From positions 181,226 through 245,225 of IMG/VR virus record IMGVR_UViG_3300047095_000752: a stretch of 64,000 nt of DNA; one strand, written 5' to 3'. Both the position numbers and the translations under genes were made by a program. Under the pieces are notes generated by a model. That model saw nothing but the letters and a program-made list of their open reading frames with translations, was not told the origin of the DNA and ran no database searches. Shown piece by piece: positions 2,963 to 57,764 of the stretch; the stretch's first letter is position 1, and each line of letters begins with the position of its first letter.

Positions 2963-3030
2963 TTATAATCCTAAAAATAATTCGTTATATTAAAATTAAT
3001 ATAACGAATTATTACGTTGTTGGTTTCATA

Positions 3031-3810
3031 TTAGATCTTGTGGTTCTCGAAGGTCCATTCCCCGTCTTCATTCCGACTCATATCTTGATAAATGTTTGGA
3101 AACTCTTCCTTAAGTAAAGTAGCAATTTTATCAAATACAACTCGAATTTCTATCTCAGCGTGTTTGGATGTACGAAGCTCGATGACATGTCGTAGAGTCC
3201 GGTGATTGGCGGTGAAGACCATCTTACACATCTTACCTGTAGGGGCAATGCGTCGGAATGCGGAAGTTAAAATCTTCTTAGTATCAAAGTCTTTAATATT
3301 ATCAATGTCATATATTTTTTCGAGTTCTTTAATTGATTTTTCAACACTTAGAACCGCATCTTGAAATACTTTATATGCTTCTTCGTTATCTTTAATAATA
3401 TCTGGAGCATACATAGAAATATCGTCGCAACGAATGTATCGATCTGATGACTGTGCATAGGCGGTTCCTGCCCTATGCCGGACTAACTCATGAGTAGCTA
3501 CACGAGATAGCTCCAACAGAAATCCGACGTTACAATGCTCTAGAACTGAACCGTGCCCGGATTTAAGAATGTTATTGATATAGATATCATTACCTTCTCT
3601 TACACGAGAAATATTCTTATTTTCAAATGTACCATCTTCTTTAGACCACGATTCATAGCAATTTCTACCGGCAAATTCAATTAATGATTCGGCACAGGTA
3701 ACACCAAGTGCTGGTTTCCATGCGATTTCATTGTCGCTAAGATAATCCCACAGTCCTGATGTAATTTGAGTCTTTGAAATGATATACACTTTGGGGTCTG
3801 TAATTCTCAT
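3031..3810 (-). CDS. thyX: FAD-dependent thymidylate synthase
   Basis: GHGSVLEH and ELVRHR-x7-S-x-R ThyX signature; AEIEIR C-terminal motif. Confidence 0.95.
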   Translation of the reverse strand: MRITDPKVYIISKTQITSGLWDYLSDNEIAWKPALGVTCAESLIEFAGRNCYESWSKEDGTFENKNISRVREGNDIYINNILKSGHGSVLEHCNVGFLLELSRVATHELVRHRAGTAYAQSSDRYIRCDDISMYAPDIIKDNEEAYKVFQDAVLSVEKSIKELEKIYDIDNIKDFDTKKILTSAFRRIAPTGKMCKMVFTANHRTLRHVIELRTSKHAEIEIRVVFDKIATLLKEEFPNIYQDMSRNEDGEWTFENHKI

Positions 3811-3867
3811 TGAAATTCCTTTGTTGCGGTTTCGGTTGGATTATTATATCATACGAATTTCAAGGCA

Positions 3868-4290
3868 TCAATACTTCTTACCATAATATATAGACTGTTC
3901 ACGTTCATGCCGAATTTTAAAATCTATTAGAATGTTACTTATTATATTCCACATCATACTATGCAGATTTAAATCCTCTAATTCTTCATTCACAATATTA
4001 CCATCACTGACGCTTAGAAGATCTGTACCATCCAATGTAAACCTCACTGCTAGACCTAATAGTGTTGGAATACCATAAAATTTAATATGTTTAGTGGGAG
4101 CTTGAATATACACGTCCCCTAATTTCATGTTCATCTTATCATTTGGGCTGGTGTTATGTATTGGTACCGTCGCTGTATAAATATTAGGATAAACTTGAAC
4201 CTCATTAAAAGTACAATTTACAAATATATCACCTTCTTTATAATTTAATATATCATCATTTGTTAATATTTTATTCGTGGTTATATACAT
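3868..4290 (-). CDS. hypothetical protein
   Basis: 140-aa ORF with GGAGG RBS. Confidence 0.6.
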   Translation of the reverse strand: MYITTNKILTNDDILNYKEGDIFVNCTFNEVQVYPNIYTATVPIHNTSPNDKMNMKLGDVYIQAPTKHIKFYGIPTLLGLAVRFTLDGTDLLSVSDGNIVNEELEDLNLHSMMWNIISNILIDFKIRHEREQSIYYGKKY

Positions 4291-4303
4291 AACAAACCTC
4301 CAG

Positions 4304-4681
4304 TTAGGTGAAAGAGTAACTAAACTTTATAAGGTTTTTATCAAATTCTTCAGATCTATACAAATAAGCGAAGTTATCTAATTCATTCTTAAACTTATCA
4401 AATCCCATATCATCCAATATATAATCGAGTCTAGTACATATATCATACATATTTTGATTATATTTAACATTACCATCCCTTGGTTTATCTCTTGGTGATA
4501 GACCTCTCGGACCTAAAGTCATACGATAGGTTTGATCTTTAAATACATTTATAATATGACCGAGATTATCATCCTTTGTAATTTGGGAGGTTACCGAAAC
4601 CATTTCGATAGAATAATACCACGTGTATTCTAATTGGGTATATCCTAAATCATGTAAATTTTTTGGTTGAGCGCCTTGCAT
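4304..4681 (-). CDS. hypothetical protein
   Basis: 125-aa ORF overlapping the upstream gene. Confidence 0.55.
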   Translation of the reverse strand: MQGAQPKNLHDLGYTQLEYTWYYSIEMVSVTSQITKDDNLGHIINVFKDQTYRMTLGPRGLSPRDKPRDGNVKYNQNMYDICTRLDYILDDMGFDKFKNELDNFAYLYRSEEFDKNLIKFSYSFT

Positions 4682-5336
4682 TATTCAAGTCCTTTAGTTG
4701 TATATATCGACATACTGTTAGATTCCTGTTGAGAGCATAGGGTACAGTTAAACTACCCCTAGACTGCATAGCAACTAAATCTAAATTAATCATACCAGCA
4801 TTTCGAGTTGACGGCTTTTCATTTATAGCATATATACCTTGAAATTTAGATGTCAACTCACTCTTAGTTATAGCTAATGCTTGTTTATAAGACTGAGAGT
4901 TTATATCAACTCTAAAGTGATATCCAGTAGAACTAATTGTAACATAGCACTTATATCTATTATATAATTGAAATAGATCCGTTACACATTTCTTTAAATC
5001 TTTTTCTGTAATCTTATTAGATCTACTGTCTATGTCAATTATTTTTTGTCGGAGAGTCTGACCGGGATATTCACTTTCGACAGATATGGAAACTGTGTAG
5101 CCAGTTATAATATCTTCATAGTTATCTTTATTTAATATTATAGCCGAATCTTTATATTTACGAACTACGGTGAAGGAATCGTGTGTATCGTATTTATTAA
5201 ACAGTAAAACTTTTCTGTAATTACACTCCTTAAGTATTTTGTCTTTGTTTGAAATGTAATACTCGTACAACTCACCTGTAGTCGTACGAGTATTACCAAC
5301 TGTTATTGTCTTGTCTGGTTCCGATGGTTGCGGCAT
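4650..5336 (-). CDS. stand-alone AEP primase-polymerase resembling the LigD Pol domain
   Basis: LYEYY..N-terminal helix, IIDID (DxD), SSTGYH (cf. SGxKGxH), INLD..QSRGSLTVPYAL (cf. IFxD..N.RG.T.VAPYSL). Confidence 0.7.
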   Translation of the reverse strand: MPQPSEPDKTITVGNTRTTTGELYEYYISNKDKILKECNYRKVLLFNKYDTHDSFTVVRKYKDSAIILNKDNYEDIITGYTVSISVESEYPGQTLRQKIIDIDSRSNKITEKDLKKCVTDLFQLYNRYKCYVTISSTGYHFRVDINSQSYKQALAITKSELTSKFQGIYAINEKPSTRNAGMINLDLVAMQSRGSLTVPYALNRNLTVCRYIQLKDLNNARRSTKKFT

Positions 5337-5344
5337 AATATCTC

Positions 5345-5764
5345 CTAGCCTCTATAACGATGATAATGCATTTCTATATATTTACCGTTTTTCAATTCTC
5401 GTCTTGTTGATTGATGTAGAACACGAAGAGTATTCCCATTCAAGTTAGACTTTGTATGTAGTTTATGGTTTATTTTATTTTTAAACCCTATATTATACAT
5501 AAGTTTTTTAGACATGAATCTATTTTTAGTTTCTAAAAATCTTTTAATAACATAGGGGCTTATGGAATACATCCACTGGTCGGACATTGGTAGATACTCA
5601 CATGCACACCAATTATAAAGATTATCGTAAAAATATGACTTTAAACTTTTATTACATTTTATATATTGTAACATATTTAGACGTGGTCGATATAAGATTA
5701 AATTTGTAAGCAGAGAGTAATTTATCATAGATTTTACTAAATACATTCTGGTTAAGTCGGACAT
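5345..5764 (-). CDS. hypothetical basic, aromatic-rich protein
   Basis: 139-aa ORF, coupled in operon. Confidence 0.5.
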   Translation of the reverse strand: MSDLTRMYLVKSMINYSLLTNLILYRPRLNMLQYIKCNKSLKSYFYDNLYNWCACEYLPMSDQWMYSISPYVIKRFLETKNRFMSKKLMYNIGFKNKINHKLHTKSNLNGNTLRVLHQSTRRELKNGKYIEMHYHRYRG

Positions 5765-9110: not shown

Positions 9111-9917
9111 ATGTCAATTTTCAAAAAAATTATACTTAGTTTAGGTGTTACATTATGTAGTTTAAATTCATATGCAATTACAGTTGATGGAAACTGGGAC
9201 GATTGGTTTTCATATTCAGGTAACATTGGTTTTAACACATGGCGTGAAAATCTAGTAACAGTTAACAACCCCAACATTCGTTTTCAAAACGATGAAGAAG
9301 GACCCACACCCGGTGGTGGTGGTCAGTTATATGATATAGAGCAAATCTTCTATGCATTTTCAGATAATGATCCCAACGCTATAAGTGGTGGTAAACTTTA
9401 TATTGGACTTGTAACGGGATTTCCACCACAAGGTGTTCCCGCAGATGCTCTATATGCTGGTGATCTTTTCATTGACATCGGTGCTACTGGTAGTTATACA
9501 TTTGCTATTAACTTAAGTGAACGACAAGCCGACGCTTCTCGCTTCAATCAAGGTTGGATCAATGTTAACTGGGATACAATAGACACAACATTTTATCCAG
9601 CAGCAAACCCATATCGAGTTGATGAAAATGGACCCGGTGTATTCAATTATACAACTTCATTAAACCCCGTTGTAGAAACCAATCTACACGGAAAGCATTA
9701 TTTTTATGAAATTTCAATCGACCTAGACAGCATCATGGAAGAACAGTTAACAAATCCAAATGGTGGTATCGGTCTACATTGGACTATGGAGTGTGGTAAC
9801 GACGTTATCGATGTCGTGGATAACACCCCTTTAAATCCAGTGCCCGAACCTAGTACAATCGCTCTGCTAACAATGGGTTGTATTGGGGCTGCATTTCGTC
9901 GTAAATTCAGCGCATAA
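9111..9917 (+). CDS. PEP-CTERM (exosortase-sorted) surface protein
   Basis: signal peptide MSIFKKIILSLGVTLCSLNSYA; C-terminal VPEPST + hydrophobic helix + RRK. Confidence 0.92.
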   Translation: MSIFKKIILSLGVTLCSLNSYAITVDGNWDDWFSYSGNIGFNTWRENLVTVNNPNIRFQNDEEGPTPGGGGQLYDIEQIFYAFSDNDPNAISGGKLYIGLVTGFPPQGVPADALYAGDLFIDIGATGSYTFAINLSERQADASRFNQGWINVNWDTIDTTFYPAANPYRVDENGPGVFNYTTSLNPVVETNLHGKHYFYEISIDLDSIMEEQLTNPNGGIGLHWTMECGNDVIDVVDNTPLNPVPEPSTIALLTMGCIGAAFRRKFSA

Positions 9918-14803: not shown

Positions 14804-14857
14804 ACCATCTTTCACTCCTTCCACGAGTTAGTTGAAAACCACAATTAAGTTTGGATT

Positions 14858-14877
14858 CAATAATTAATATATATAGT
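14858..14877 (-). promoter_or_regulatory. phage promoter class A (AYTATATATAT-N7-YG)
   Basis: ACTATATATAT TAATTAT TG upstream of the GC-rich gene. Confidence 0.7.
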
Positions 14878-17775: not shown

Positions 17776-17812
17776 GAACGCCAGACCATATAAATTGGTT
17801 TGGCGTTCTTTT
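17776..17812 (+). terminator. intrinsic terminator
   Basis: GAACGCCAGACCA/TGGTTTGGCGTTC followed by T-run. Confidence 0.7.
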
Positions 17813-17893
17813 TATCGGTATCGTTTGCATATATCCTTCATGTATGGTACACTTCATATACAATACTCACCACAACACAACGGGACCCAACCA

Positions 17894-18748
17894 ATGAGTT
17901 TTTTTCGTTACCCCGGCGGCAAGTCGAAGCTAAGAACCAAAATTGTATCTAAATTAAATGATATGGCTGGAGACTTAGATTTGGAGTACCGGGAACCTTT
18001 CTTTGGGGGTGGTAGTATAGGACTACAATACCTAGAAAAATCAAAAAATAATAAAGTGTGGATTAATGATTTAGACTTGGGTATTTATTGTCTATGGGTG
18101 TCAGTGTTTAGATATCCAGAGAAACTTAAAGAGAATGTTTTAAAATTTACTCCAACCGTAGATGCATTTTACTCATTCAAAAACGATTTAACTAGAGACT
18201 GTAAATTAATTGATATTGATACTGTTGTAAATTTTGGATTCAAAAAACTAGCGATACATCAAATATCATACTCTGGATTGGGTACAAAATCAGGTGGACC
18301 ATTAGGTGGGCAATCCCAACTTTCAGATTATAAGATTGACTGCCGATGGTCACCTAAATATATTTGTAAAAAAATAGATAAACTTAATAAACAGTTTAAA
18401 AGATATAGTTTAAGATTTTCAGGAGTAGATTTTTCCGAAGTTATACTGGAAGATACTAAGGATGCTATTATTTATCTAGATCCACCATATTTTGTAAAGG
18501 GCAATGATTTATATCAGCACGGATTCAACACTGAAGATCATATACGCCTAGCAAATTGTTTAAAGAATACAAAACATAAATGGTTATTGTCGTATGATGA
18601 TTGTGATGAAATACGAGATTTATATAGCTGGGCAACCATAGAAGAACTTGATGGTGTGAGTTATAGTATAACAGCACTTAAAGATAAAGACTCGGGTAAA
18701 AGAACTAGCAGACAAAAAACCGAATTATTAATATCGGCGGGTTATTAA
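17894..18748 (+). CDS. DNA adenine methyltransferase (Dam/D12 class)
   Basis: RYPGGKS, EPFFGGGS, IND, YLDPPY, WLLSYDD; likely start ATG 17894. Confidence 0.9.
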   Translation: MSFFRYPGGKSKLRTKIVSKLNDMAGDLDLEYREPFFGGGSIGLQYLEKSKNNKVWINDLDLGIYCLWVSVFRYPEKLKENVLKFTPTVDAFYSFKNDLTRDCKLIDIDTVVNFGFKKLAIHQISYSGLGTKSGGPLGGQSQLSDYKIDCRWSPKYICKKIDKLNKQFKRYSLRFSGVDFSEVILEDTKDAIIYLDPPYFVKGNDLYQHGFNTEDHIRLANCLKNTKHKWLLSYDDCDEIRDLYSWATIEELDGVSYSITALKDKDSGKRTSRQKTELLISAGY

Positions 18749-18749
18749 A

Positions 18750-19424
18750 ATGGATTTGTTAGAACAAATAAAAACAGAAGTTTTGATATATGATTGTACA
18801 TTTAAATTAGCAGAAGAGACACATAAAAAATCTTTGGATAAAATTATTTGTTTTTCTAATGCAATGAATTCAAAAGGTCAATCTAAAATACACTATGAAA
18901 ATGAACGAAATGCTGTAAATGCATTAAACAATATTAGAGTCGGTAAATATGGTGAATTAGCAGTTGCTGTATTTTTATATAAAAATGGATATCCAAAAAT
19001 AGTACCTGATATGACGGTTAGATATGGTGCGAGTAAAGGGTGGGATTGTGATCTACCATATAAAGAATTAGACCCCACTCTCCCGGATATACATGTAAAA
19101 ACATGCGACGTAAATACAACTAAGTATTTAAAATCAAATGGCAGGACAGACAATTATTCTTGGACATTTCAATTTGGTAATAAATCAGGCAAGGGTGGTA
19201 AAGATATTCTATTTACAACTCCGGATAGCACCGAAGTTATTTTTTTGTCTGTAGTATCAAATATAAATAACCCTAACGTTACAGTTTACGCTTCTGGTCC
19301 TTGGTGTAAGTTATATCCGATATTAAAAGATCCAATGTTAGATTATTTAATAGGATTTAAAAAATGTATATATTCAAATGATTTATTAGATATTGCTAAG
19401 ACTGTTAAATTAGAAATAAATTAA
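18750..19424 (+). CDS. putative PD-(D/E)XK nuclease coupled to the MTase
   Basis: GKYGE helix...PD...WDCDL...IHVKT; starts 1 nt after the MTase stop. Confidence 0.5.
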   Translation: MDLLEQIKTEVLIYDCTFKLAEETHKKSLDKIICFSNAMNSKGQSKIHYENERNAVNALNNIRVGKYGELAVAVFLYKNGYPKIVPDMTVRYGASKGWDCDLPYKELDPTLPDIHVKTCDVNTTKYLKSNGRTDNYSWTFQFGNKSGKGGKDILFTTPDSTEVIFLSVVSNINNPNVTVYASGPWCKLYPILKDPMLDYLIGFKKCIYSNDLLDIAKTVKLEIN

Positions 19425-19426
19425 AC

Positions 19427-19469
19427 AAAAAATCACCGTCCCTTAAATATTGGAGGCGGTGATTTTTTT
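19427..19469. terminator. bidirectional intrinsic terminator
   Basis: AAAAAATCACCGTC/GGCGGTGATTTTTTT between convergent genes. Confidence 0.75.
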
Positions 19470-19475
19470 GGGACA

Positions 19476-19772
19476 TCAAGTACATCCGACCCCCTGCGCC
19501 GGGATCTTATGGTCACCCGCCCGTAGGGTCGACCACCGCCCCTCTCCCTCCGGCCACTTCCATTCGCAGAACCCCGCCACCAACTCGAAGATGGATCCGT
19601 CTTCGAACTTGGCGGAAACATCACCCTTGTTTCCGCCACTCTCCACGAATTGTTTACAGTCTCCTTTTATGGAGGTAACCCGCTGATTAAACTCCGGGTT
19701 GGAGTTGAACTTCGTCTCAACTAATTTCATAGCCAAGACGTAGTCCCTTCCGAATGTTGATGATGTCCACAT
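19476..19772 (-). CDS. GC-rich orphan protein
   Basis: AAAGGG RBS, class A promoter upstream, terminator downstream. Confidence 0.65.
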   Translation of the reverse strand: MWTSSTFGRDYVLAMKLVETKFNSNPEFNQRVTSIKGDCKQFVESGGNKGDVSAKFEDGSIFELVAGFCEWKWPEGEGRWSTLRAGDHKIPAQGVGCT

Positions 19773-19842
19773 GTTATATCCCTTTTATGTGAAACTTTGA
19801 TATCCCCATCAAGTCACACAGAAGTTATGGGAATATAATTTA

Positions 19843-19862
19843 CAATTATTAATATATATAAT
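19843..19862 (-). promoter_or_regulatory. phage promoter class A
   Basis: ATTATATATAT TAATAAT TG. Confidence 0.7.
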
Positions 19863-19866
19863 TAAA

Positions 19867-20199
19867 TTAAAATACACAATTATGAATTCTATCCGCTTTT
19901 ACTTTATCCCCGACGATGTAGTAAAAGTTTTTTTGCTTTAACGCATTCGCGAATTTGTGTAGGCAGATGTGAACGGCACCTTCAATCCGTATCCCGGAAT
20001 TGAGATCTACTCGGGTACCGTCATTTAATTTCATGACCATCTTATCATCCGTCTTATCACGTAATGTTACTGTATATCCGTTGGACGAATCAAGCTCAAT
20101 ATTGGACCCGTACACCCATATGATCTCCCCTATCGAAGGAAGTATTTTTCCACCGATGGTGATATCACGCCCCGTAACATTAACTAACATTGGTACCAT
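19867..20199 (-). CDS. hypothetical protein
   Basis: AAGGAGG RBS before ATG 20199. Confidence 0.6.
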   Translation of the reverse strand: MVPMLVNVTGRDITIGGKILPSIGEIIWVYGSNIELDSSNGYTVTLRDKTDDKMVMKLNDGTRVDLNSGIRIEGAVHICLHKFANALKQKNFYYIVGDKVKADRIHNCVF

Positions 20200-20211
20200 A
20201 AAACCTCCTTG

Positions 20212-20250
20212 AAAAAGAAAAACCGGCGCTCCCCACAATGAGGAGCGCCG
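20212..20250 (-). terminator. intrinsic terminator
   Basis: CGGCGCTCC/GGAGCGCCG stem followed by T-run on the minus strand. Confidence 0.75.
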
Positions 20251-20256
20251 AACCTG

Positions 20257-20340
20257 TTACGCGAAGAAGTCGTTGCCATTCGACTTCTTCTTGAAGAGTT
20301 TGTTGAAAATATTAATGATATAATCAATTACCCCAGCCAT
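20257..20340 (-). CDS. 27-aa amphipathic peptide MAGVIDYIINIFNKLFKKKSNGNDFFA
   Basis: own class A promoter, AAAGGG RBS and terminator; below the ORF-track cutoff. Confidence 0.65.
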   Translation of the reverse strand: MAGVIDYIINIFNKLFKKKSNGNDFFA

Positions 20341-20395
20341 ACCGTTACCCTTTCGATGTTTAATGTTGTATTATAGAATATACATACTCTATCTT

Positions 20396-20415
20396 CGTTA
20401 GTTTATATATATAAT
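20396..20415 (-). promoter_or_regulatory. phage promoter class A
   Basis: ATTATATATAT AAACTAA CG. Confidence 0.65.
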
Positions 20416-20861
20416 CACTGTACAGTGGATGGTAGTTGCAATAATTGAGTCCCTCGTTGCCAAGAACTCTCCAATAACATAGGTCTATTCACTTTTGATG
20501 AATCGACACGAGATGTCGCTAATACCCAGCTTGCCGCCATTATCCCACTTCCCGATGATATGTTTATATATACTTTGCTTTTTCGGTGCATATGAATTAG
20601 TTGTTCACTTGCCATATAAATGGATTCCATATCATTAGGATGATCTATGATAACTTTTTTTGCTCGTATATATAATTTTGGGTGTTTAGCTCTTAGATTA
20701 TGAACAAACCCACCACTTCCTAATACCCGCTTGTATCGTATAGAATCATATAATATAAACAACTGATCTATTTCTATATCCCGCAGGATATCACATATCG
20801 CCCCTCGTTTCGTGTTTTCCTCAAGATCGGTAGTACCAACCCAACTCAATAAGACACTCAC
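20415..20861 (-). CDS. stand-alone CARF-domain protein (RtcR/PspF-type N-terminal domain)
   Basis: LLSWVGTTDL...P.D..SIY...INISSGS..MAASWVL...LLESS..RG pattern of CARF domains of sigma54 activators; no AAA+ or HTH. Confidence 0.7.
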   Translation of the reverse strand: MSVLLSWVGTTDLEENTKRGAICDILRDIEIDQLFILYDSIRYKRVLGSGGFVHNLRAKHPKLYIRAKKVIIDHPNDMESIYMASEQLIHMHRKSKVYINISSGSGIMAASWVLATSRVDSSKVNRPMLLESSWQRGTQLLQLPSTVQ

Positions 20862-20874
20862 ATAAACACTCCTT

Positions 20875-21300
20875 CTAAGTTTCGTTCAAAGGGTTATACA
20901 CAACACACGTGATTAAAGATTGTAAACAATAAGTATTATCAAAATCCGGATCCCTATATACAAATACGACATTGTTAAAACACATGAGATATAAATAATA
21001 CTTCGATAATCCGAATTCAACATAAAAACTACGATATACAGACATGTTATAAACAGATCCATAATAACGAAAGTTGTAATATTTTTTCTGTTTATTATTT
21101 AAATATTGTTTATTATGTGTTGTCTTAGTATGATGTGTTATATGTATATCCTTTGGTATGATATTTCGAAGATCCGATGTTTTACTATCTATGAAATAAG
21201 GTAAAACGAGTCTATAATCTTTTTTCAAAATTTTAAATATTAGTTCCATACATCGGATAATTATATTATCATAGGTGTCCGACAGATTTAATTTGTACAC
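20875..21300 (-). CDS. orphan protein (array member)
   Basis: 141 aa; CMELIFKILKKDYR N-terminal motif shared with other array genes. Confidence 0.5.
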   Translation of the reverse strand: MYKLNLSDTYDNIIIRCMELIFKILKKDYRLVLPYFIDSKTSDLRNIIPKDIHITHHTKTTHNKQYLNNKQKKYYNFRYYGSVYNMSVYRSFYVEFGLSKYYLYLMCFNNVVFVYRDPDFDNTYCLQSLITCVVYNPLNET

Positions 21301-21326
21301 ACGAAGCCCTCAAGTTAAATACCATA

Positions 21327-21725
21327 TCATAGACGATACTCAAATATATATTCTCCGAAATACGTCCCGGTTAAATCATAGTCCTCAAGTCTAACCAAAA
21401 AACTTAACAATACGAAATTTGTTTTAAAAGTAAATGCGGTCAATGTAGTAATTCCATCACAGTCGTATATTATGGTATCACTTAATATCACCGCATTCTT
21501 GTTGAATGTATAATTATGTTTAGGCTTATATTTCAAATCTGGTATATACAATTCCATTTCTTCACCATTTGGATAGGAGTCATATAAACCAATTAGTCTG
21601 TTGTTTACACTTTGGCTTGACCACAATTTCATGTAATTGAATATAGGGAATATTTTAACATTTAAGTTAGACACAAGAACATGGGTATAATATATACACT
21701 GTTGAATTCTATGTTGTATATCCAT
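21327..21725 (-). CDS. orphan paralogue (PIFN...KxNF family)
   Basis: FPIFNY...KTNFVLL. Confidence 0.55.
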   Translation of the reverse strand: MDIQHRIQQCIYYTHVLVSNLNVKIFPIFNYMKLWSSQSVNNRLIGLYDSYPNGEEMELYIPDLKYKPKHNYTFNKNAVILSDTIIYDCDGITTLTAFTFKTNFVLLSFLVRLEDYDLTGTYFGEYIFEYRL

Positions 21726-22114
21726 TATACGGGGAGTACCGAACTTCTAAATGGCAGTCTGTTATAATTAGATGATGGACATGCATATCTAGATGTTAGA
21801 ATTAAAAAATTGTACTTTGGAACTCTTAGAACTAATACGGTCGAGTCGTGTACACTAGATTTGGAGAACCCGCGACACACACTCAATTTAAATGTGTGAT
21901 CCGAATTAACTAATGGATAAGGAAAGTGAATGTCGATCCCATAGAAATTGAATTTTACTTTATCACTTTGTTTGGAATCTATACATATTATATCATGCAT
22001 CATAAAATTAAATATAGGAAATCGACATATTTTTAGGTCGTAGATCAATCTTAAAATTAAAGCCAAACTATTAGTTAACTTAGATTTATATACAAGACTT
22101 GGTCCCACCATCAC
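21725..22114 (-). CDS. orphan paralogue (PIFN...KxNF family)
   Basis: FPIFNF...KYNFLIL. Confidence 0.55.
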   Translation of the reverse strand: MMVGPSLVYKSKLTNSLALILRLIYDLKICRFPIFNFMMHDIICIDSKQSDKVKFNFYGIDIHFPYPLVNSDHTFKLSVCRGFSKSSVHDSTVLVLRVPKYNFLILTSRYACPSSNYNRLPFRSSVLPV

Positions 22115-22560
22115 ATCATCCTCCTTTTTTGCTTAACATTCATCATACTGTAGTTATATGGCCAGGTATCTCTATGGTATTCAGAATCCTCGTTGGACCC
22201 GTCTGTTACCCTTTTTAATAACATAAAATTATATTTACTGGTGAATAAGGATAGGGATACATCACAACATTTATCTCTTATTGGCGCAAACACATTCCTG
22301 AATATAATATTTGGGGAACCAACTGATATTTTAAAATTAGACATATAAAGAGACTCAGCAGACGACCTTCGTATTGGCGTAGTTTTGGTATAATTAGTTT
22401 GAAAGTTATTATAATCCCATGCTTTAACAAAATTAAATATAGGTATAATTGTAATATGTAACCCAAAGTCTATGAGCTTAAACAATTTATTTACTATACT
22501 ATATTGCATTCCTTTAATATAATGTATATACTTATATGAATTTTGATTCCATGGGTACAA
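22111..22560 (-). CDS. orphan paralogue (PIFN...KxNF family)
   Basis: IPIFNF...KYNFMLL. Confidence 0.55.
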   Translation of the reverse strand: MYPWNQNSYKYIHYIKGMQYSIVNKLFKLIDFGLHITIIPIFNFVKAWDYNNFQTNYTKTTPIRRSSAESLYMSNFKISVGSPNIIFRNVFAPIRDKCCDVSLSLFTSKYNFMLLKRVTDGSNEDSEYHRDTWPYNYSMMNVKQKRRMM

Positions 22561-22617
22561 GCTCTAACCTCCACTCGTCATAATTAACCGCAGAAAAATA
22601 AAACAGAAGTATAACTC

Positions 22618-22637
22618 CAATAATAAATATATATAGT
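22618..22637 (-). promoter_or_regulatory. phage promoter class A
   Basis: ACTATATATAT TTATTAT TG; heads the paralogue/CARF operon. Confidence 0.7.
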
Positions 22638-22650
22638 TAAATAAACGTCG

Positions 22651-22663
22651 GGACAAATGTGTA
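22651..22663 (+). promoter_or_regulatory. phage promoter class B (GGACAAAT)
   Basis: GGACAAATGTGTA upstream of the 22686 gene. Confidence 0.6.
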
Positions 22664-22685
22664 TATACTTAAAAGGAGATTTTAT

Positions 22686-22892
22686 ATGATTACTCATAAA
22701 GACATACACGTAGTTTTAGAATCATTTGTCAAAGAAACTACGCAAAAAAATAATGCCGTAAAGACCGAAGATAATTTTATGTTAGAGTCTAACTTACTTG
22801 AGTACGGTAGTGAAACCTATGATTTTGCTGGAAATATTAAAGTTGCTGACGAAGCTGCCTATATGGATTTCATCATCGAAAATAACCACTAA
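22686..22892 (+). CDS. small acidic protein with LxE motifs
   Basis: AAGGAG RBS, ATG 22686. Confidence 0.6.
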   Translation: MITHKDIHVVLESFVKETTQKNNAVKTEDNFMLESNLLEYGSETYDFAGNIKVADEAAYMDFIIENNH

Positions 22893-22972
22893 ATCCTAGT
22901 TTCGACTTTCTTTTTACCTCACTAGATGGTATACTGTAGTAACAACAGTTTCCAATTTAGTGAGGTTTTTTC

Positions 22973-24169
22973 ATGTCTAATAATCTTAAACCGATAATGT
23001 TCTGCACACAACCATGTATGGAGATATTCGATTATATAAATCCAAATACCATTGACACGATACATCTATATATAGATTTAAAAAATTCATCGACCAACTT
23101 ATTTATACCAGATGTAGTACAAGAAATAGTAGAGACAAGTCGCCGAATGGGTAAGTCAGTTGAAAGTTCTATTTTTCAATCTATTATATTGACTTGCTCG
23201 AACTGGATAAGTGCTGCTCGAAGCCGTGGGTTTAATTGTAAGATAATCATATGCAATGATAAAGGCAGGTCCGAATACCATACAAAACTAAATCCATTAT
23301 ATAAAAAGAATAGAAAAATCACAAATGTATTGATGGAACATTATAGTGAAGAAATGGATCAGATTAAGACCCGCAACTGGGATTTCGCTGAGAAGATATG
23401 TGCAAAATTAAATAATATACATTTTATTAATATTAATTTCTTAGAAAGTGATTTTTTACCTTATTATTTAATAACTCGATATTTCAACGAATCGCCAAAT
23501 GTATATCATATCGTATCATCATGTGATAAGGATCACTTTCAATTATTAAATAAACCCAATACAATAATGTTCTCACGCAAATCAGGCACTACAACCATAT
23601 TAGATAAACAATCGTATTTAAGTAAATTTTTAAAGATTAATAAAGCCAGCGTTAAATCACAATCCAAATGGATCGATATAATGTCTAAAGTAAATCCAGA
23701 ATATATTGTATTAATAATGGCTATGTGCGGGGACGTATCCGATAACGTATTTGGTATACCTAGAATTGGTGATAAAACTGCATTAAAAATGATATCAGAT
23801 CATGATGTTGTAAACGAACTAATTGGTACGGTGGATGAACTTGAAGATAGATTATATAATGGTGGAAAAGTAATTCTAGATAAGCCTGATTTATATGATA
23901 GTTTAGATAATAATTGGAAATTAGCTGTAGATAATAATGACTTACTCACCAAAGCATATAAACAAATAAGCTACGAATCGCTATCAAGATGGCTTGATAA
24001 AACTGACATGATTAATGTTAAAGTTCCTGCTCGTAAAGCGATTGATGATAATATTAATAAACCATTCTATGTTTATAACGAAACTCACAAAGAAAATTTT
24101 ATCAAAAAAATAAAAGAATTAATACACGACTTTCACTTGAACGATTCTGATATTTACAATTTATTTTAA
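22973..24169 (+). CDS. 5'-3' exonuclease / T4 RNase H-like (FEN family)
   Basis: YID, YKKNR, ESD, SCDKD, GDVSDNVFGIPRIGDKTA (H3TH). Confidence 0.85.
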   Translation: MSNNLKPIMFCTQPCMEIFDYINPNTIDTIHLYIDLKNSSTNLFIPDVVQEIVETSRRMGKSVESSIFQSIILTCSNWISAARSRGFNCKIIICNDKGRSEYHTKLNPLYKKNRKITNVLMEHYSEEMDQIKTRNWDFAEKICAKLNNIHFININFLESDFLPYYLITRYFNESPNVYHIVSSCDKDHFQLLNKPNTIMFSRKSGTTTILDKQSYLSKFLKINKASVKSQSKWIDIMSKVNPEYIVLIMAMCGDVSDNVFGIPRIGDKTALKMISDHDVVNELIGTVDELEDRLYNGGKVILDKPDLYDSLDNNWKLAVDNNDLLTKAYKQISYESLSRWLDKTDMINVKVPARKAIDDNINKPFYVYNETHKENFIKKIKELIHDFHLNDSDIYNLF

Positions 24170-24172
24170 TCT

Positions 24173-24218
24173 AAAAAACACGCTACCGGGATATCTGCCG
24201 GTAGCGTGTTCTTTTTTA
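24173..24218. terminator. bidirectional intrinsic terminator
   Basis: AACACGCTACCGG/CCGGTAGCGTGTT flanked by A- and T-runs. Confidence 0.8.
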
Positions 24219-24222
24219 GTTC

Positions 24223-24633
24223 TTATGCTTTCTTTCCTTTCTGGATTGCTTCGAGGACAATCCCGGTTGAAAGGACCGCGAACAATATCACGGTCTGCAC
24301 CATAGCCGCCCCAGCCACTGCAGTTAGGCAGTAGGGGGATTCGTTCAACTTGTAGGACATGGCGATGATCGCCAGTCCCGCTACGACGAGGGAAATAACC
24401 GCCCGGAGGCGGATGTGATTTTCCCACATGTAGCGCGTCCGCTCATGTGGCTCCGACCACCTCTGATTGATAATCAGTACCCAAAGCGCCGCTGTTGTTC
24501 CGGCGACACATGATACCACCGGGATGCTGATGTTGTTGAGTGGTGCGAAATACGCCGCCCCGTAGATTGCAGCCTCTCCAATGATAGCAGCGATTAGCAT
24601 AAAAGGCATTAAAGCCTTCCGATCTTCAAACAC
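24223..24633 (-). CDS. GC-rich multi-pass membrane protein
   Basis: about four hydrophobic helices; GAAGGAG RBS. Confidence 0.7.
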   Translation of the reverse strand: MFEDRKALMPFMLIAAIIGEAAIYGAAYFAPLNNISIPVVSCVAGTTAALWVLIINQRWSEPHERTRYMWENHIRLRAVISLVVAGLAIIAMSYKLNESPYCLTAVAGAAMVQTVILFAVLSTGIVLEAIQKGKKA

Positions 24634-24663
24634 GATTTTACTCTCCTTCCAAGAGGTATTATA

Positions 24664-24981
24664 CTATTTCCCGAACATCGCCCCCATCATCCGACCCGCC
24701 GTCGCCAATCCCATCACCGTATTTTTAATCTCCTCTATTTTGGGTCTAAGACCCGATGCCTTGAAGCGGAGCGCGTCAACAATGACGCCCACCACAATCA
24801 AGGTAACAACGCCACATATCAGATAGGTCGGGGCGGCGAGCGCCTTCATAGCACCCACCGCGAGGAAGCCCACCATGTAGGCTTCCTTGTTCCCCCCGGT
24901 CTGGATTCCTTTCCAGACCGGGGTAACGAATGCTCGGGTGAGGGACCCAATCCTTTTGAGTCCCTTTACGATGGGGTTCAT
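24664..24981 (-). CDS. GC-rich membrane protein
   Basis: ATG 24981 in ATGA overlap with the upstream gene; hydrophobic core. Confidence 0.65.
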   Translation of the reverse strand: MNPIVKGLKRIGSLTRAFVTPVWKGIQTGGNKEAYMVGFLAVGAMKALAAPTYLICGVVTLIVVGVIVDALRFKASGLRPKIEEIKNTVMGLATAGRMMGAMFGK

Positions 24982-25316
24982 GTGCAAGCCCCAACCCGTG
25001 CACCCACGGACTGGGCGAGGTACCATGCCGCGTAGACGGCGATGGCGGGGATGAACCACAAGAGGCTACACCCCGTCACCACGAGGTCTAGAATCTGACC
25101 GGCCTTGTGGTCTACGGTCCCCTTCCTCTCAATCGCGAGCATGATACCCATGCTCACGAAACTTCCCGTGATCGCCACAGCGGCAATCGTGGGGAAGATG
25201 GTGCCGACAGCACACCAACCAATAAGGCTGATGGCGTCGGCGGTGACTGGCGACCTCTCAAGGAAGTCAAGACACTTCCCGATGGTCACCTGAAGGTGAA
25301 GTTTGAGTTTACCCAT
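24978..25316 (-). CDS. GC-rich membrane protein
   Basis: AAAGGA RBS; hydrophobic helices. Confidence 0.65.
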   Translation of the reverse strand: MGKLKLHLQVTIGKCLDFLERSPVTADAISLIGWCAVGTIFPTIAAVAITGSFVSMGIMLAIERKGTVDHKAGQILDLVVTGCSLLWFIPAIAVYAAWYLAQSVGARVGACT

Positions 25317-25349
25317 AATATATCCTTTCTTGGAGATGTTTTTGTTCAG

Positions 25350-25796
25350 TTATACCGCCACACAACCGACGCGGGCGGGACGCTCACCCATAAAGCTATT
25401 ATTACGGATGGTGGATAAAATCTTCTCACCGATAATGTAAGTGGCGAGGGCGGTGATGACACGGAGTGTAAAACCGAGTAGCACACCCACCACCATAAGC
25501 TGCAACCCAACCAACCAGATGGTCAGTTTGCCTAGCACCGCATAACCGGCGAAGCGGGCAATACCCCCTTCGATGACGACCGTCAGTATCGTCTTCAACG
25601 AGGGCTTAGAGACGAGCTCAATCGCGGAGCATACAAGCACCACACCACCAATGGCGGTGAGAGCGACTGGGGCGGCGACGAGACCCATCGCCATCCCACC
25701 TACACCCACAACAACGGACGCCACAGGGGCGAACTTCACGCCGAAGTTGAGGGCGCGGACGATGATATTCTTGACATTGGATACGATGCTTTTCAT
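25350..25796 (-). CDS. GC-rich membrane protein
   Basis: first gene after class A promoter; very hydrophobic. Confidence 0.7.
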   Translation of the reverse strand: MKSIVSNVKNIIVRALNFGVKFAPVASVVVGVGGMAMGLVAAPVALTAIGGVVLVCSAIELVSKPSLKTILTVVIEGGIARFAGYAVLGKLTIWLVGLQLMVVGVLLGFTLRVITALATYIIGEKILSTIRNNSFMGERPARVGCVAV

Positions 25797-25869
25797 GGTA
25801 TTACCCTTTGATGTTTAGACTATATGAAACCACCATTCAATCCGCATAGATCGATGATAGTATTCTTTA

Positions 25870-25889
25870 CACTTCTTAATATATATAAT
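25870..25889 (-). promoter_or_regulatory. phage promoter class A
   Basis: ATTATATATAT TAAGAAG TG, immediately after terminator hairpin 25901-25928. Confidence 0.7.
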
Positions 25890-25938
25890 GAAAAATCAAC
25901 AAAAAAAGACCCCATAAATATGAGGTCAAAATGTTAAA

Positions 25939-28190: not shown

Positions 28191-28239
28191 ATTTATGGGT
28201 GTTAATTTACCTCACTTTAAGTTAAAGTTGAACTATATA

Positions 28240-28259
28240 CAATATTTAATATATATAAT
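28240..28259 (-). promoter_or_regulatory. phage promoter class A (no downstream ORF)
   Basis: ATTATATATAT TAAATAT TG. Confidence 0.65.
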
Positions 28260-28702
28260 TAAGTGGTAGTTTCACCATCGAAGTGTTCATCATCAGCCTT
28301 AGCTATTTCTTTAGTTTTATGAATTGTTCCGTCTTTGTGGTTTGGAGGGGAGTAAATACTGTATAATTTAAGTTTAGTAGTTCCAGTATTTACAATGTTG
28401 TGCTTAACTCCAGCCGGGATAATAATTCCTGCGCCGGGATATATTTCATATTCTTTACCATCAATAACACTTACACCGGTACCTTCTTCGATTCTAAAAA
28501 ATTGATCTAAGGTATGGGTTTCGGAACCGATATCTTCATTTTCATTAAGGGACATAGCGACTAACTGACAATTGTTAGCTGTATATATAACTTTTCTAAA
28601 ATTGTCATTATCTTCAGTTAGTTTTTCAATATTATCTATAAACCCATTTTGACTTGATAATGTGTTTTCATTTAATTTCTTTTTTGTTATAACTTTATAC
28701 AT
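28259..28702 (-). CDS. cupin-2 domain protein with N-terminal extension
   Basis: NFRKVIYT..CQLVAMSL...DIGSETH..DQFFRIEEG...IPAGVKHNIVN...LKLYSIYSPPNH. Confidence 0.88.
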   Translation of the reverse strand: MYKVITKKKLNENTLSSQNGFIDNIEKLTEDNDNFRKVIYTANNCQLVAMSLNENEDIGSETHTLDQFFRIEEGTGVSVIDGKEYEIYPGAGIIIPAGVKHNIVNTGTTKLKLYSIYSPPNHKDGTIHKTKEIAKADDEHFDGETTT

Positions 28703-31239: not shown

Positions 31240-31295
31240 GACATACCTTCCATTATGCCACCTATTCTTAGAATTAGGGGCGTTAGTTGTAAATT

Positions 31296-31315
31296 CAATA
31301 GTTTATATATATAGT
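31296..31315 (-). promoter_or_regulatory. phage promoter class A
   Basis: ACTATATATAT AAACTAT TG. Confidence 0.7.
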
Positions 31316-34902: not shown

Positions 34903-35415
34903 ATGGAAGAAGAAATTTGGAAACCTATTCCAGAATATGAAGATTCATATGAAGTTAGCAATCTAGGTAGAATAAAAAGTATAAAATTCAATAAAGAAAA
35001 AATACTAAAACTATCATTCGATAATTATGGCTATAATCATTTGAGTTTACGTAAAAATAAAATAGGTAAAACCAAAAAAGTACATAGATTAGTTATGTTA
35101 ACTTTTAAAAATGATTCTTATTTTGATGGCGCTCAAGTTAATCACATTAATGGTATAAAGACTGATAATAGATTAGATAATCTAGAATGGTGCGATCAAT
35201 TCCATAATATGCAACACGCATTTAAATTAGGGCTACAAATATCACTCAAGGGTGAAAATCATGGTGCCGCTAAATTAAATCAAAATCAAGTTAATAAGAT
35301 TAGATTTTACTATGAAAATAAAATATTTAATCAACGTCAATTAGCAAATATGTTTAATATAAAACGAGGAACCATTTCCGATATCACCACTAAAAAAATT
35401 TGGTCTCATTGTTAA
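34903..35415 (+). CDS. NUMOD4-HNH homing endonuclease
   Basis: EEIWKPIPEYEDSYEVSNLGRIKS; VNHINGIKTDNRLDNLEW. Confidence 0.92.
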   Translation: MEEEIWKPIPEYEDSYEVSNLGRIKSIKFNKEKILKLSFDNYGYNHLSLRKNKIGKTKKVHRLVMLTFKNDSYFDGAQVNHINGIKTDNRLDNLEWCDQFHNMQHAFKLGLQISLKGENHGAAKLNQNQVNKIRFYYENKIFNQRQLANMFNIKRGTISDITTKKIWSHC

Positions 35416-35450
35416 ATAAATTTAGAAGTAACCGTTCGAAAGCGAGTTTT

Positions 35451-37751
35451 ATGAAACATTATATCATCGATACAAATATCCTTATTACAGACCCAAATGC
35501 AATTACGAATCTACTGGATGGAGGTACGAATAAAGTTACAGTTCCAATTAATGTATTGATGGAATTGGATAAACTTAAAAATGATATTAAAGTTGGTTAT
35601 TTAGCGCGAAAAGCCACAAATGAATTAATAAAACTCAGAGAACAAAATAAGGTAACTATACTTGGTTCTGAATCTAGTGATTGGATTGATAATTATTTAG
35701 CTTCACCTGATGGTAAGATTTTAGATAATATATTAAAAAGTAAACTTAATGTTAAAGACGACAATATATTTTTGACTAATGATAATATATTTTCAATGAC
35801 ATCCGAACAGATATTTGCTGCTAAGAAGAGAAAGATTAAAGTTGAACCTTATAATACAAAAGGTGAGTATATATCAGATCCAGTTTTATTCAATGGATTT
35901 TTAAAGAGTAGTAACGTTGAAGATAACTTTATTAACGTAGCTAATTATTTTACTTGGAATGAAGGTAAATTAAATTTTAACAATAAAAAGAAGTCTCGTG
36001 CGGTCGCGGAACAAAAGGTGTGGACTCTAAGCCCTCGCCACTATACCCAAAAAATGATGATTGATCTTATTCTTAATGACGATATCAAACTTTTAAGCGT
36101 GCAGGGGCAGGCCGGGTTTGGGAAAGCTCAACCATTAGATTCGAAAGTGTTGACACCTAATGGGTGGATCCGAATGGGTGATATAAAAATTGGAGATGTG
36201 GTATCAACTCCAGATAGCACCACAGCATCTGTCGTTGGGGTGTACCCGCAAGGTGAAATTGACATATATCAAGTGACGTTTAATGACGGAACAAAAACCG
36301 AATGTTGTGGCGATCATTTGTGGAAAGTTCGAACTTATTGTGAAAAACATAAATACAAAGTAAAAACAACAAATGAACTTAAAGATGACTTATACGTTAA
36401 AACTAAAGTCGAAGGTAAGGGACAACGAATAAAATATTTTAACTTCCCATTAGAATGTGCCTACATGGATGAAAAACCAATCCCAATACACCCCTATGTA
36501 ATTGGTGTACTGTTGGGTGACGGAACTCTTTATTCTAGCTATACAAAATTAACTTCAAATGATCCAGAAATAATAGAAGAATGTAGAAGACTTATAGGTA
36601 ATGATATTATACTTGAAAAAACAAATGACGAAAATAATATGGAATACACATTTATAAAAAAGATCCGAAGTTCATCTTTTGTAAAAAATAGTTTTAATGA
36701 AATACTAAAGTCTTTAGACTTAGCCGGTAAAAAATCATATGAAAAGTACATACCGAAAGATTATTTATTCAATTCAAAACAAAATAGAATAGAACTACTC
36801 CAAGGATTGATGGACACCGATGGATTTGTGTCAGACGGTAAAGTGACAAAAGAAATATCATATTGTAGTACATCTTATCAGTTGTGTTTGGGTGTTATGG
36901 ATTTAGTCCGTTCACTTGGTGGAAAAGCCACTATAAACCAAAAGAAAACATTTTGTTATACGAAAGGTTATGAGAAAGAGGGTAGACCCGCATGGAATGT
37001 AAATATAAATTTTTCAAACGATGTAATTCCATTTAAATTAAAGAGAAAGGTCGATAGGTTTTTGAGTTTAAAAAAATATCCCGTCTCTAAAGGTATAAAA
37101 AGTATTGAATATATAGGTAAAAAAGAGGCACAATGTATTTCAATAGATCACAAAGATCATTTATATATAACGGACGATTTTATTTCTACACACAACACTG
37201 TGATCGCCTTAGCCTGTGCTCTTTATGAAACATTTGAAAAACATAAGTATAAAAAGATCGTATTCGTTAAACCTATGTTTGAAATTGGTAATTCTATGGG
37301 ATTCCTTCCGGGGGACGTGAATGATAAAATAGGTTGCTATTTCGAGTATGCGTTAGATCTACTTCTATTCCTGAGTGATCAGCGCAAAGCAACTAAGATA
37401 TTTGATGATCCACAGAATTATAAAAAGATTAATGAAAAGGCATTCAAATTTATGCCACTAAACTTTATTCGCGGCCAAAATTTAAACGAGACACTTCTTA
37501 TATGCGATGAGTTTCAAAACGCTAACAAACACGAACTGAAGTCGATCCTTACACGATGCGGCGAAGGTACTAAAGCGATCATCCTTGGTGACGTAGATCA
37601 AATCGACAATGCAGCAGTGAACAAACAAAATAATGCGATCAGTGCTCTGGTTAGAAATATGCTCCCGAATGATAAGTATGCTCATATTGTACTTAGTGGT
37701 AAACAGTCACGCGGACCTGTCTGCGATATGATCCTTAACTCTGGAATTTAA
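35451..37751 (+). CDS. phoH: PIN-PhoH ATPase (PhoH2-type) containing an intein
   Basis: IIDTN PIN start; GQAGFGK|T Walker A split by intein; GFLPGD, IRG, DEFQN, TRCGE, GD..QID. Confidence 0.9.
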   Translation: MKHYIIDTNILITDPNAITNLLDGGTNKVTVPINVLMELDKLKNDIKVGYLARKATNELIKLREQNKVTILGSESSDWIDNYLASPDGKILDNILKSKLNVKDDNIFLTNDNIFSMTSEQIFAAKKRKIKVEPYNTKGEYISDPVLFNGFLKSSNVEDNFINVANYFTWNEGKLNFNNKKKSRAVAEQKVWTLSPRHYTQKMMIDLILNDDIKLLSVQGQAGFGKAQPLDSKVLTPNGWIRMGDIKIGDVVSTPDSTTASVVGVYPQGEIDIYQVTFNDGTKTECCGDHLWKVRTYCEKHKYKVKTTNELKDDLYVKTKVEGKGQRIKYFNFPLECAYMDEKPIPIHPYVIGVLLGDGTLYSSYTKLTSNDPEIIEECRRLIGNDIILEKTNDENNMEYTFIKKIRSSSFVKNSFNEILKSLDLAGKKSYEKYIPKDYLFNSKQNRIELLQGLMDTDGFVSDGKVTKEISYCSTSYQLCLGVMDLVRSLGGKATINQKKTFCYTKGYEKEGRPAWNVNINFSNDVIPFKLKRKVDRFLSLKKYPVSKGIKSIEYIGKKEAQCISIDHKDHLYITDDFISTHNTVIALACALYETFEKHKYKKIVFVKPMFEIGNSMGFLPGDVNDKIGCYFEYALDLLLFLSDQRKATKIFDDPQNYKKINEKAFKFMPLNFIRGQNLNETLLICDEFQNANKHELKSILTRCGEGTKAIILGDVDQIDNAAVNKQNNAISALVRNMLPNDKYAHIVLSGKQSRGPVCDMILNSGI
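36126..37196 (+). mobile_element. class 3 intein with LAGLIDADG endonuclease (357 aa)
   Basis: starts AQPLD (Ala1), ends THN before Thr+1; DHLW, AQCI, THN give the W-C-T triplet; LLGDG and LQGLMDTDG motifs. Confidence 0.9.
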
Positions 37752-38551: not shown

Positions 38552-38620
38552 GGTATTTCTCCCTACCACGTTACACATCCCACCACCATTTCACAATGAA
38601 ATTGGCTAGTGGTTTGTTTA

Positions 38621-38640
38621 CACTTCTCTATATATATAAT
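38621..38640 (-). promoter_or_regulatory. phage promoter class A
   Basis: ATTATATATAT AGAGAAG TG. Confidence 0.7.
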
Positions 38641-38674
38641 GAAATTTACTATATTACGAACAGTGTGTTATAAT

Positions 38675-57703: not shown

Positions 57704-57740
57704 CATTTGGGCTTTATTATAATAACGATATAATGTGCAA

Positions 57741-57753
57741 GGACAAATAAATG
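57741..57753 (+). promoter_or_regulatory. phage promoter class B
   Basis: GGACAAATAAATG. Confidence 0.6.
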
Positions 57754-57764
57754 AGGAAATTATA

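Follow-up and report, generated by a model that had tools for sequence, protein, structure and literature searches.

The gene under study occupies positions 20415-20861 on the minus strand of the window, by which we mean the whole stretch of 64,000 nucleotides that was analysed, corresponding to the last 64 kb (positions 181,226 to 245,225) of the 245-kb IMG/VR virus record IMGVR_UViG_3300047095_000752. CheckV estimates this record to be 78% complete; it is AT-rich (GC mostly 0.30-0.42), and its sequence is held by many lake-water metagenomes. The gene encodes 148 aa, with a GTG start at 20861 and a TGA stop at 20415-20417. A Shine-Dalgarno sequence, AAGGAG, lies at 20869-20874 (-), 7 nt upstream of the start and directly after the stop codon of the preceding gene (TAG at 20875-20877). 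Orthologues at 85% and 75% identity were found, and these as well as more distant ones at 35-44% identity are all 141-162 aa long. When compared with the 75% identical orthologue from a relative phage locus (designated L002), dN/dS was about 0.08, with synonymous sites near saturation (dS > 2), indicating that the frame is under strong purifying selection. The observation made in a preliminary description, namely that only the CARF-like module of the RtcR-type CARF-AAA-HTH sigma-54 activators is encoded here, was confirmed.

Organisation of the locus and its surroundings

The same description placed the gene last in an early, "class A" operon starting at 22637. In agreement with an operon, five minus-strand genes run from 22560 to 20415 with overlaps or gaps of at most 26 nt. 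The four small ORFs ahead of the CARF gene (20875-21300, 21327-21725, 21725-22114 and 22111-22560; 141, 132, 129 and 149 aa) are weak paralogues at 20-27% identity that share PIFNF and KYNFxLL motifs. No function could be suggested for them, as they gave no Pfam or PHROG match, and an ESM Atlas search with the first of them returned only noise (model pLDDT 0.36). The same layout of four small ORFs followed by the CARF gene occurs in L002. Upstream of the putative operon, in the divergent intergenic region, lies a promoter-like motif of the TATATATA type, ACTATATATATTTATTATTGGAG, at 22607-22637 (-), and the same motif family (D9) is found upstream of the minus-strand genes starting at 14824 and 31239. 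In the window as a whole, two families of TATATATA-centred motifs recur in intergenic regions (14847-14877, 22607-22637 and 31285-31315; also 19836-19866, 25863-25893, 28233-28263 and 38614-38644), and these are probably phage promoters. Their spacing does not fit the sigma-70 consensus, and a scan for sigma-70 promoters showed no enrichment (15 sites found against 21 expected). The labels "early" and "class A" are best regarded as unverified designations, given that no RNA data were listed for this sequence.

Downstream of the CARF gene, a strong intrinsic terminator is present at 20213-20251 (-), with a 13-bp stem containing 9 GC pairs (20223-20251) followed by TTTTTCTTTT. It should be underlined, however, that the CARF gene may not be the last one before this terminator. 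The intergenic element directly after its stop codon (20345-20414 (-), ATTATATATATAAACTA...ATAGAGTATG...CATTAAACAT; repeat family D11), which comprises a TATATATA box plus ATAGAGTATG, is conserved with the 75% identical relative far better than synonymous sites are, and is probably an internal promoter or regulatory site. It is followed by a possible ORF of 27 aa (20257-20340 (-)), whose ATG is conserved in L002, where a 57-aa gene is called at this place.

A megablast search of positions 19000-23000 against 50,697 phage records gave no match, PHROGs contained no family for the CARF gene or for six of its neighbours, an Rfam search of the whole window returned nothing, and no tRNA was detected. 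Other features were seen within the window. A Dam-type N6-adenine methyltransferase (17795-18748 (+)) is followed by a conserved 224-aa protein for which no function could be given (18750-19424 (+)), both being syntenic in relative phages next to the class II ribonucleotide reductase (RNR). A GC-rich island at 24200-25800 (0.49 against about 0.30-0.34 in the flanks) carries four small, hydrophobic, membrane-like ORFs on the minus strand without Pfam matches. A 783-aa protein (35400-37751 (+)) combines PIN_4, a LAGLIDADG domain (possibly an intein or homing endonuclease insertion) and PhoH, whereas a 772-aa protein (44783-47101 (+)) contains a glycoside hydrolase family 9 (cellulase) domain and a CelD_N Ig-like domain. 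Tandem units spaced 36-81 nt apart lie at 58359-58690 (+) inside the 57735-59069 ORF. A 268-aa ORF (9111-9917 (+)) ends in a PEP-CTERM sorting motif, which is unusual for a phage gene and possibly a hint to the type of host; the class II RNR was uninformative in this respect.

Subfamily, predicted fold and distribution of the CARF protein

To determine which type of CARF domain the gene encodes, we first compared the protein with profile collections. Pfam alone gave only sub-threshold hits (HFX_2341_N, 3e-5; RtcR, 0.0097), although one solo relative (P0009) passed the RtcR threshold with 39 bits against a cut-off of 23.1. Among the PADLOC-DB profiles named after CARF families, residues 1-144 matched positions 1-136 of the 481-position profile RtcR_PspF2--CARF_AAA_HTH (PDLC01995) at E 1.3e-15, followed by RtcR_PspF1 at 8.8e-7 and the CARF1 (Csm6-type) profiles at about 1e-5, whereas the canonical RtcR profile was not hit at E <= 0.001. 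All 11 members of the family alignment (A1) matched RtcR_PspF2, and hhalign of the family against the N-terminus of E. coli RtcR gave a probability of 95% and E 2.2e-8, despite a sequence identity of only about 18-19%. The sigma-54-interacting AAA+ domain, the C-terminal HTH and the conserved linker of these regulators are absent: the protein ends at residue 148, the motif following P144 is missing, and no AAA+ ORF lies downstream. It is therefore the detached domain and not a regulator. A fragment of a broken regulator gene was also considered, but was rejected since all phage orthologues are solo domains of the same length, under purifying selection and followed by a terminator.

Next we examined the predicted fold. 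The AF2 model (pLDDT 89.2, pTM 0.86) shows a Rossmann-like beta-alpha core with strands at residues 2-7, 33-39, 64-70, 96-100, 128-133 and 137-141, the last two forming the C-terminal hairpin. All top-50 Foldseek hits in the PDB were CARF proteins, and a generic Rossmann or SLOG protein was rejected on this ground. The best of them was Enterococcus italicus Csm6 (EiCsm6; 6TUG) bound to a cA6 mimic (TM 0.72-0.74), and S. thermophilus Csm6' (StCsm6'; 8PCW/8PE3) also matched. Among the Swiss-Prot AFDB models the best hit was E. coli RtcR residues 4-160 (E 7e-8, TM 0.74), followed by EiCsm6. Crn1 (Sso2081), which like the phage protein is small and stand-alone and is a dimeric CARF protein, gave a clear structural match (E about 1.5e-5, TM 0.56), but no sequence similarity to it was detected, and Crn1 is cellular, CRISPR-linked and cA4-specific and belongs to other CARF families (CARF7/m13). 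A structure prediction of the dimer, which had been named beforehand as a check, supported a homodimer with an ipSAE of 0.60 against 0.02 for the best control. This mark was reached by 20 of 30 proteins solved as pairs of one chain and by 1 of 23 solved as single chains, although these counts hold only roughly here because our own alignment was used, and the result may reflect likeness to solved CARF dimers. The predicted interface covers residues 74-83, 101-118 and 131-146.

The family is rare. An exhaustive phmmer search of 1.8 billion representative proteins found only ten: the window's own protein, five other solo proteins of 141-162 aa, one 97-aa fragment and three proteins of about 500 aa. 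The latter, the only cellular hits, are CARF-Sigma54_activat-AAA_lid-HTH_8 regulators. A search with a narrower alignment (A2) added one IMG/VR contig and four distant cellular loci. The solo homologues fall into six protein clusters, and in the four clusters whose contigs were inspected every one is phage-borne, lying on phage-like contigs. Three groups occupy the same slot as here, between a 5'-3' exonuclease gene and the class II RNR/Dam methylase block, while a more distant group lies next to a phage lysozyme on a 112-kb contig. In contrast, a tblastn search of the 50,697 deposited phage records gave no match, and a fold search of BFVD gave no convincing viral CARF (best E 8.5e-4 with TM below 0.5). 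A published search of 28,000 phage genomes (the Millard database) for short CARF or SAVED proteins found only one SAVED protein (PMC12751052). No such viral protein appears in the literature or databases searched here. Solo CARFs of this broad type are nevertheless not unique to phages, as the ESM Atlas lists clusters of short Csm6-CARF and RtcR-domain proteins in bacteria. In a maximum-likelihood tree of CARF regions, the 11 phage solo sequences formed one clade (UFboot 95, SH-aLRT 89) beside or within 28 cellular RtcR_PspF2 CARFs, with E. coli RtcR as a very long outgroup branch (length 3.9). The rows were a hand-picked sample of the hits and the tree was midpoint-rooted, so that the direction of transfer is not proven.

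The cellular relatives were then inspected at five loci, of which four showed defence-type neighbours and one (L010) showed none. The regulators closest to the phage protein sit next to defence genes. P0010 is followed by DUF2130, DruH (E 7e-279) and a YprA/MZB helicase, a Druantia III-like pair. P0011/P0014 is flanked by a DUF4258 gene and a VWA gene, and faces a DUF2357 (McrC-like) protein, PDC-M26A-like and MkoB-like proteins and a UPF1-like helicase. Locus L012 pairs the regulator with DUF2130, and locus L013 with an N6 DNA methylase. The DUF2130 gene, which lies next to the RtcR_PspF2-type regulator in two unrelated cellular loci (L008 and L012), matches LmuB (SMC-like) profiles weakly and may be a regular partner or target of these regulators. 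The defence context of the regulators agrees with the literature (PMC11090510, PMC4012209): Makarova et al. 2014 describe RtcR-like CARF-AAA-HTH proteins that are not linked to rtc but are often associated with R-M systems (PMC4012209), and RtcR homologues head the CoCoNuT, Druantia III and R-M superoperons of Bell et al. 2024.

Sequence features bearing on the mechanism

The loops that form the CARF pocket are conserved between the phage solo proteins and 120 cellular CARFs, namely W7, G9 and D12 after strand 1, G104, S/T105 and M108 after strand 4, and S133 and G137 in the hairpin. Expressed as motifs, the phage protein shares WxGxxD after strand 1, IY in helix 3, GS/TxxM and W after strand 4 and SxxxG in the hairpin with the RtcR_PspF2 regulators. 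This argues that ligand binding, which is inferred here from sequence alone, is still under selection. Of the general CARF signature (polar S/T at the end of strand 1 and [DN]x[ST]xxx[RK] after strand 4; PMC4012209), T10/T11 follow strand 1 and N100-I-S102 is present, but the basic position is G106; RtcR families mostly lack this basic residue according to the same paper, so the deviation fits the RtcR type. The strand-4 loop also differs between the groups, being SSGSGIM in phages and SPGTPAM in cells. Moreover, the solo proteins are unusually basic, with pI 9.1-9.6 (one at 8.4) against a median of 5.8 for cellular CARF domains and 6.7 for the ORFs of the window. Like the conserved pocket loops, this gives only indirect support for the binding of a nucleotide-derived ligand.

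These features leave room for an action against type III CRISPR, in which a CARF dimer would bind cyclic hexa-adenylate or another cyclic oligoadenylate (cOA) and either sponge it or cleave it to A3>P as Csm6 CARF domains do, so that Csm6-type effectors stay off. In its favour, EiCsm6 is the nearest solved structure both by fold and by profile search of PDB sequences (E 4.5e-10; StCsm6' at 1.9e-5), and the GxTD and SG[ST]xxM loops are shared, as is a dimeric CARF, which for the phage protein is predicted. Thr11, which stabilises the scissile phosphate in EiCsm6 and on which its self-cleavage depends (PMC7101355), aligns with T11, and an equivalent is present in 7 of the 8 solo sequences aligned (Cys in the solo protein P0005), while Thr114 aligns with S105. 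The basic charge also speaks for this reading. All studied cA6-activated Csm6 CARFs are ring nucleases, and known stand-alone CARF and SAVED ring nucleases are cA4-specific (PMC12409355, PMC12830947). On the other hand, the EiCsm6 cA6 contacts N10 and Q116 are T10 and I107 here, profile scores favour RtcR_PspF2 by ten orders of magnitude over the CARF1/Csm6 profiles, and no Csm6 appeared among the single-sequence hits in 1.8 billion proteins. The NCBIfam model cas_csm6 was matched sub-threshold by 8 of the 11 family members, for the window protein only over positions 2-119 of 433 and at 14.4 bits against a cut-off of 150, and the HEPN ribonuclease domain of Csm6 is lacking. In addition, E. coli RtcR was not activated by cA4 or cA6 in vitro (PMC9650030). 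We therefore consider this possibility a live rival, but an unlikely one.

A second alternative is that the solo CARF acts as a dominant negative, docking on the host regulator itself, either on its AAA+ domain as the regulator's own CARF does or on its CARF to form dead heterodimers, and thereby locking the regulator off whatever the ligand level. RtcR of E. coli / Salmonella is the activator of the rtcBA RNA repair operon, and its CARF domain binds tRNA halves with a 2',3'-cyclic phosphate. An isolated E. coli RtcR CARF domain represses constitutively active RtcR-deltaCARF in vitro when added in trans (PMC9650030). The phage protein belongs to the same regulator subfamily, and several predicted dimer-interface residues (Y82, M108, W112, S133, P144) are shared with cellular CARFs. 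However, identity to cellular CARFs is only about 22-33%, residues strongly conserved in cells differ in the phage proteins (W55, T98, P103, P106, A107, L115 and K117), and strict conservation of the pocket loops would not be needed for a purely protein-protein mechanism. Such a mechanism on its own is thus also doubtful, although it may act together with ligand sequestration.

The phage record further encodes an RNA ligase (PF09414 plus a PHA02142 OB fold, 437 aa) and a 206-aa protein matching the ligase domain of bacterial Pnkp (record positions 1740-5429, outside the window), which points to an RNA repair capacity and suggests that RNA damage matters in the infections of this phage, although the link to the CARF gene is circumstantial. 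Since E. coli RtcR binds RtcA and RtcB through its CARF domain (PMC9650030), the solo CARF could conceivably bind host RtcA/RtcB or the phage's own ligases, either recruiting them to damaged tRNA or blocking host RNA repair, rather than intercepting a signal. This seems very improbable, as the ligase genes lie about 195 kb away and not in the operon, RtcB was not found in the phage record, and RtcR_PspF2 is not linked to rtcBA (PMC4012209). Searches of the record for T4 Rnl1 and 2H/LigT families were likewise negative, but the Rnl1 control gave no signal anywhere, so that result is uninformative.

A putative decoy of defence regulators

Our preferred, though tentative, explanation is that the gene encodes a minimal homodimeric CARF sensor domain of the RtcR_PspF2 type, which phages took, apparently once, from sigma-54 enhancer-binding regulators encoded beside inducible defence gene clusters. 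Expressed alone during infection, it would act as a decoy receptor that retains the ligand pocket of the cellular sensors and binds, and so withholds, the small anionic signal they read, most likely RNA or oligonucleotide ends carrying a 2',3'-cyclic phosphate, or a related (cyclic) oligoadenylate. The host regulator would then not be activated and the defence or RNA-damage response would not be induced; the protein might also hold the regulator off in trans. The analysis itself establishes the gene and its purifying selection, the CARF fold of the model and the predicted dimer, the subfamily, the phage-borne distribution of the solo homologues whose contigs were inspected, the conserved pocket loops and the basic charge, whereas ligand binding, the identity of the ligand, any cOA cleavage and the anti-defence effect are inferred.

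The interpretation given in the preliminary description was only partly supported. Its structural part, a stand-alone CARF domain of the RtcR type, was right. The functions that it proposed, a signal sponge or ring nuclease against type III CRISPR/CBASS-like signalling or a dominant-negative partner of a host CARF regulator, all remain possible, but the weight shifts from type III CRISPR/CBASS towards host RtcR_PspF2-type regulators, given the subfamily membership by profile and tree, the defence genes beside such regulators in the loci inspected and in the literature, the repression in trans by an isolated RtcR CARF domain, and the RNA-ligase-type repair genes of the phage.

Viral counter-measures against nucleotide signalling are already known as ring nucleases (AcrIII-1 (DUF1874), AcrIII-2 (viral SAVED), Crn4b) and as sponges (Tad1, Tad2, Acb2, Acb4). 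The logic would be the same here, in that a small virus-encoded protein, in the case of AcrIII-2 scavenged from a host sensor domain, removes a defence signal, but the folds or subfamilies differ. None of those found in the literature searched is a CARF domain of the RtcR type, a subfamily not seen before in viruses, and none is known to target the sigma-54 regulators predicted to head large inducible defence superoperons. If the protein instead binds or cleaves cA6, it would be the first stand-alone CARF, and the first viral one, directed at that messenger; in a 2025 survey, cA6-activated Csm6 effectors were not found with any known ring nuclease, and all dedicated ring nucleases characterised up to then prefer cA4 (PMC12409355), the one known exception, the non-Rossmann Crn4, having first been found next to Csm6-2 (PMC12830947).

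In its furthest-reaching form, which at present must be regarded as unlikely though not excluded, the decoy reading would make the protein the first viral inhibitor aimed at the transcriptional alarm of bacterial defence islands, stopping sigma-54-dependent induction of Druantia III, CoCoNuT and R-M superoperons either by soaking up their still-unknown ligand or by repressing the regulator in trans. If the protein is a decoy, it would be in-vivo evidence that RtcR-like regulators matter for phage defence, and, as a small, soluble, stand-alone sensor, it could provide a compact tool to fish out and identify their ligand, an open question since 2014. It would also add a class of anti-defence protein made by detaching a host sensor domain.
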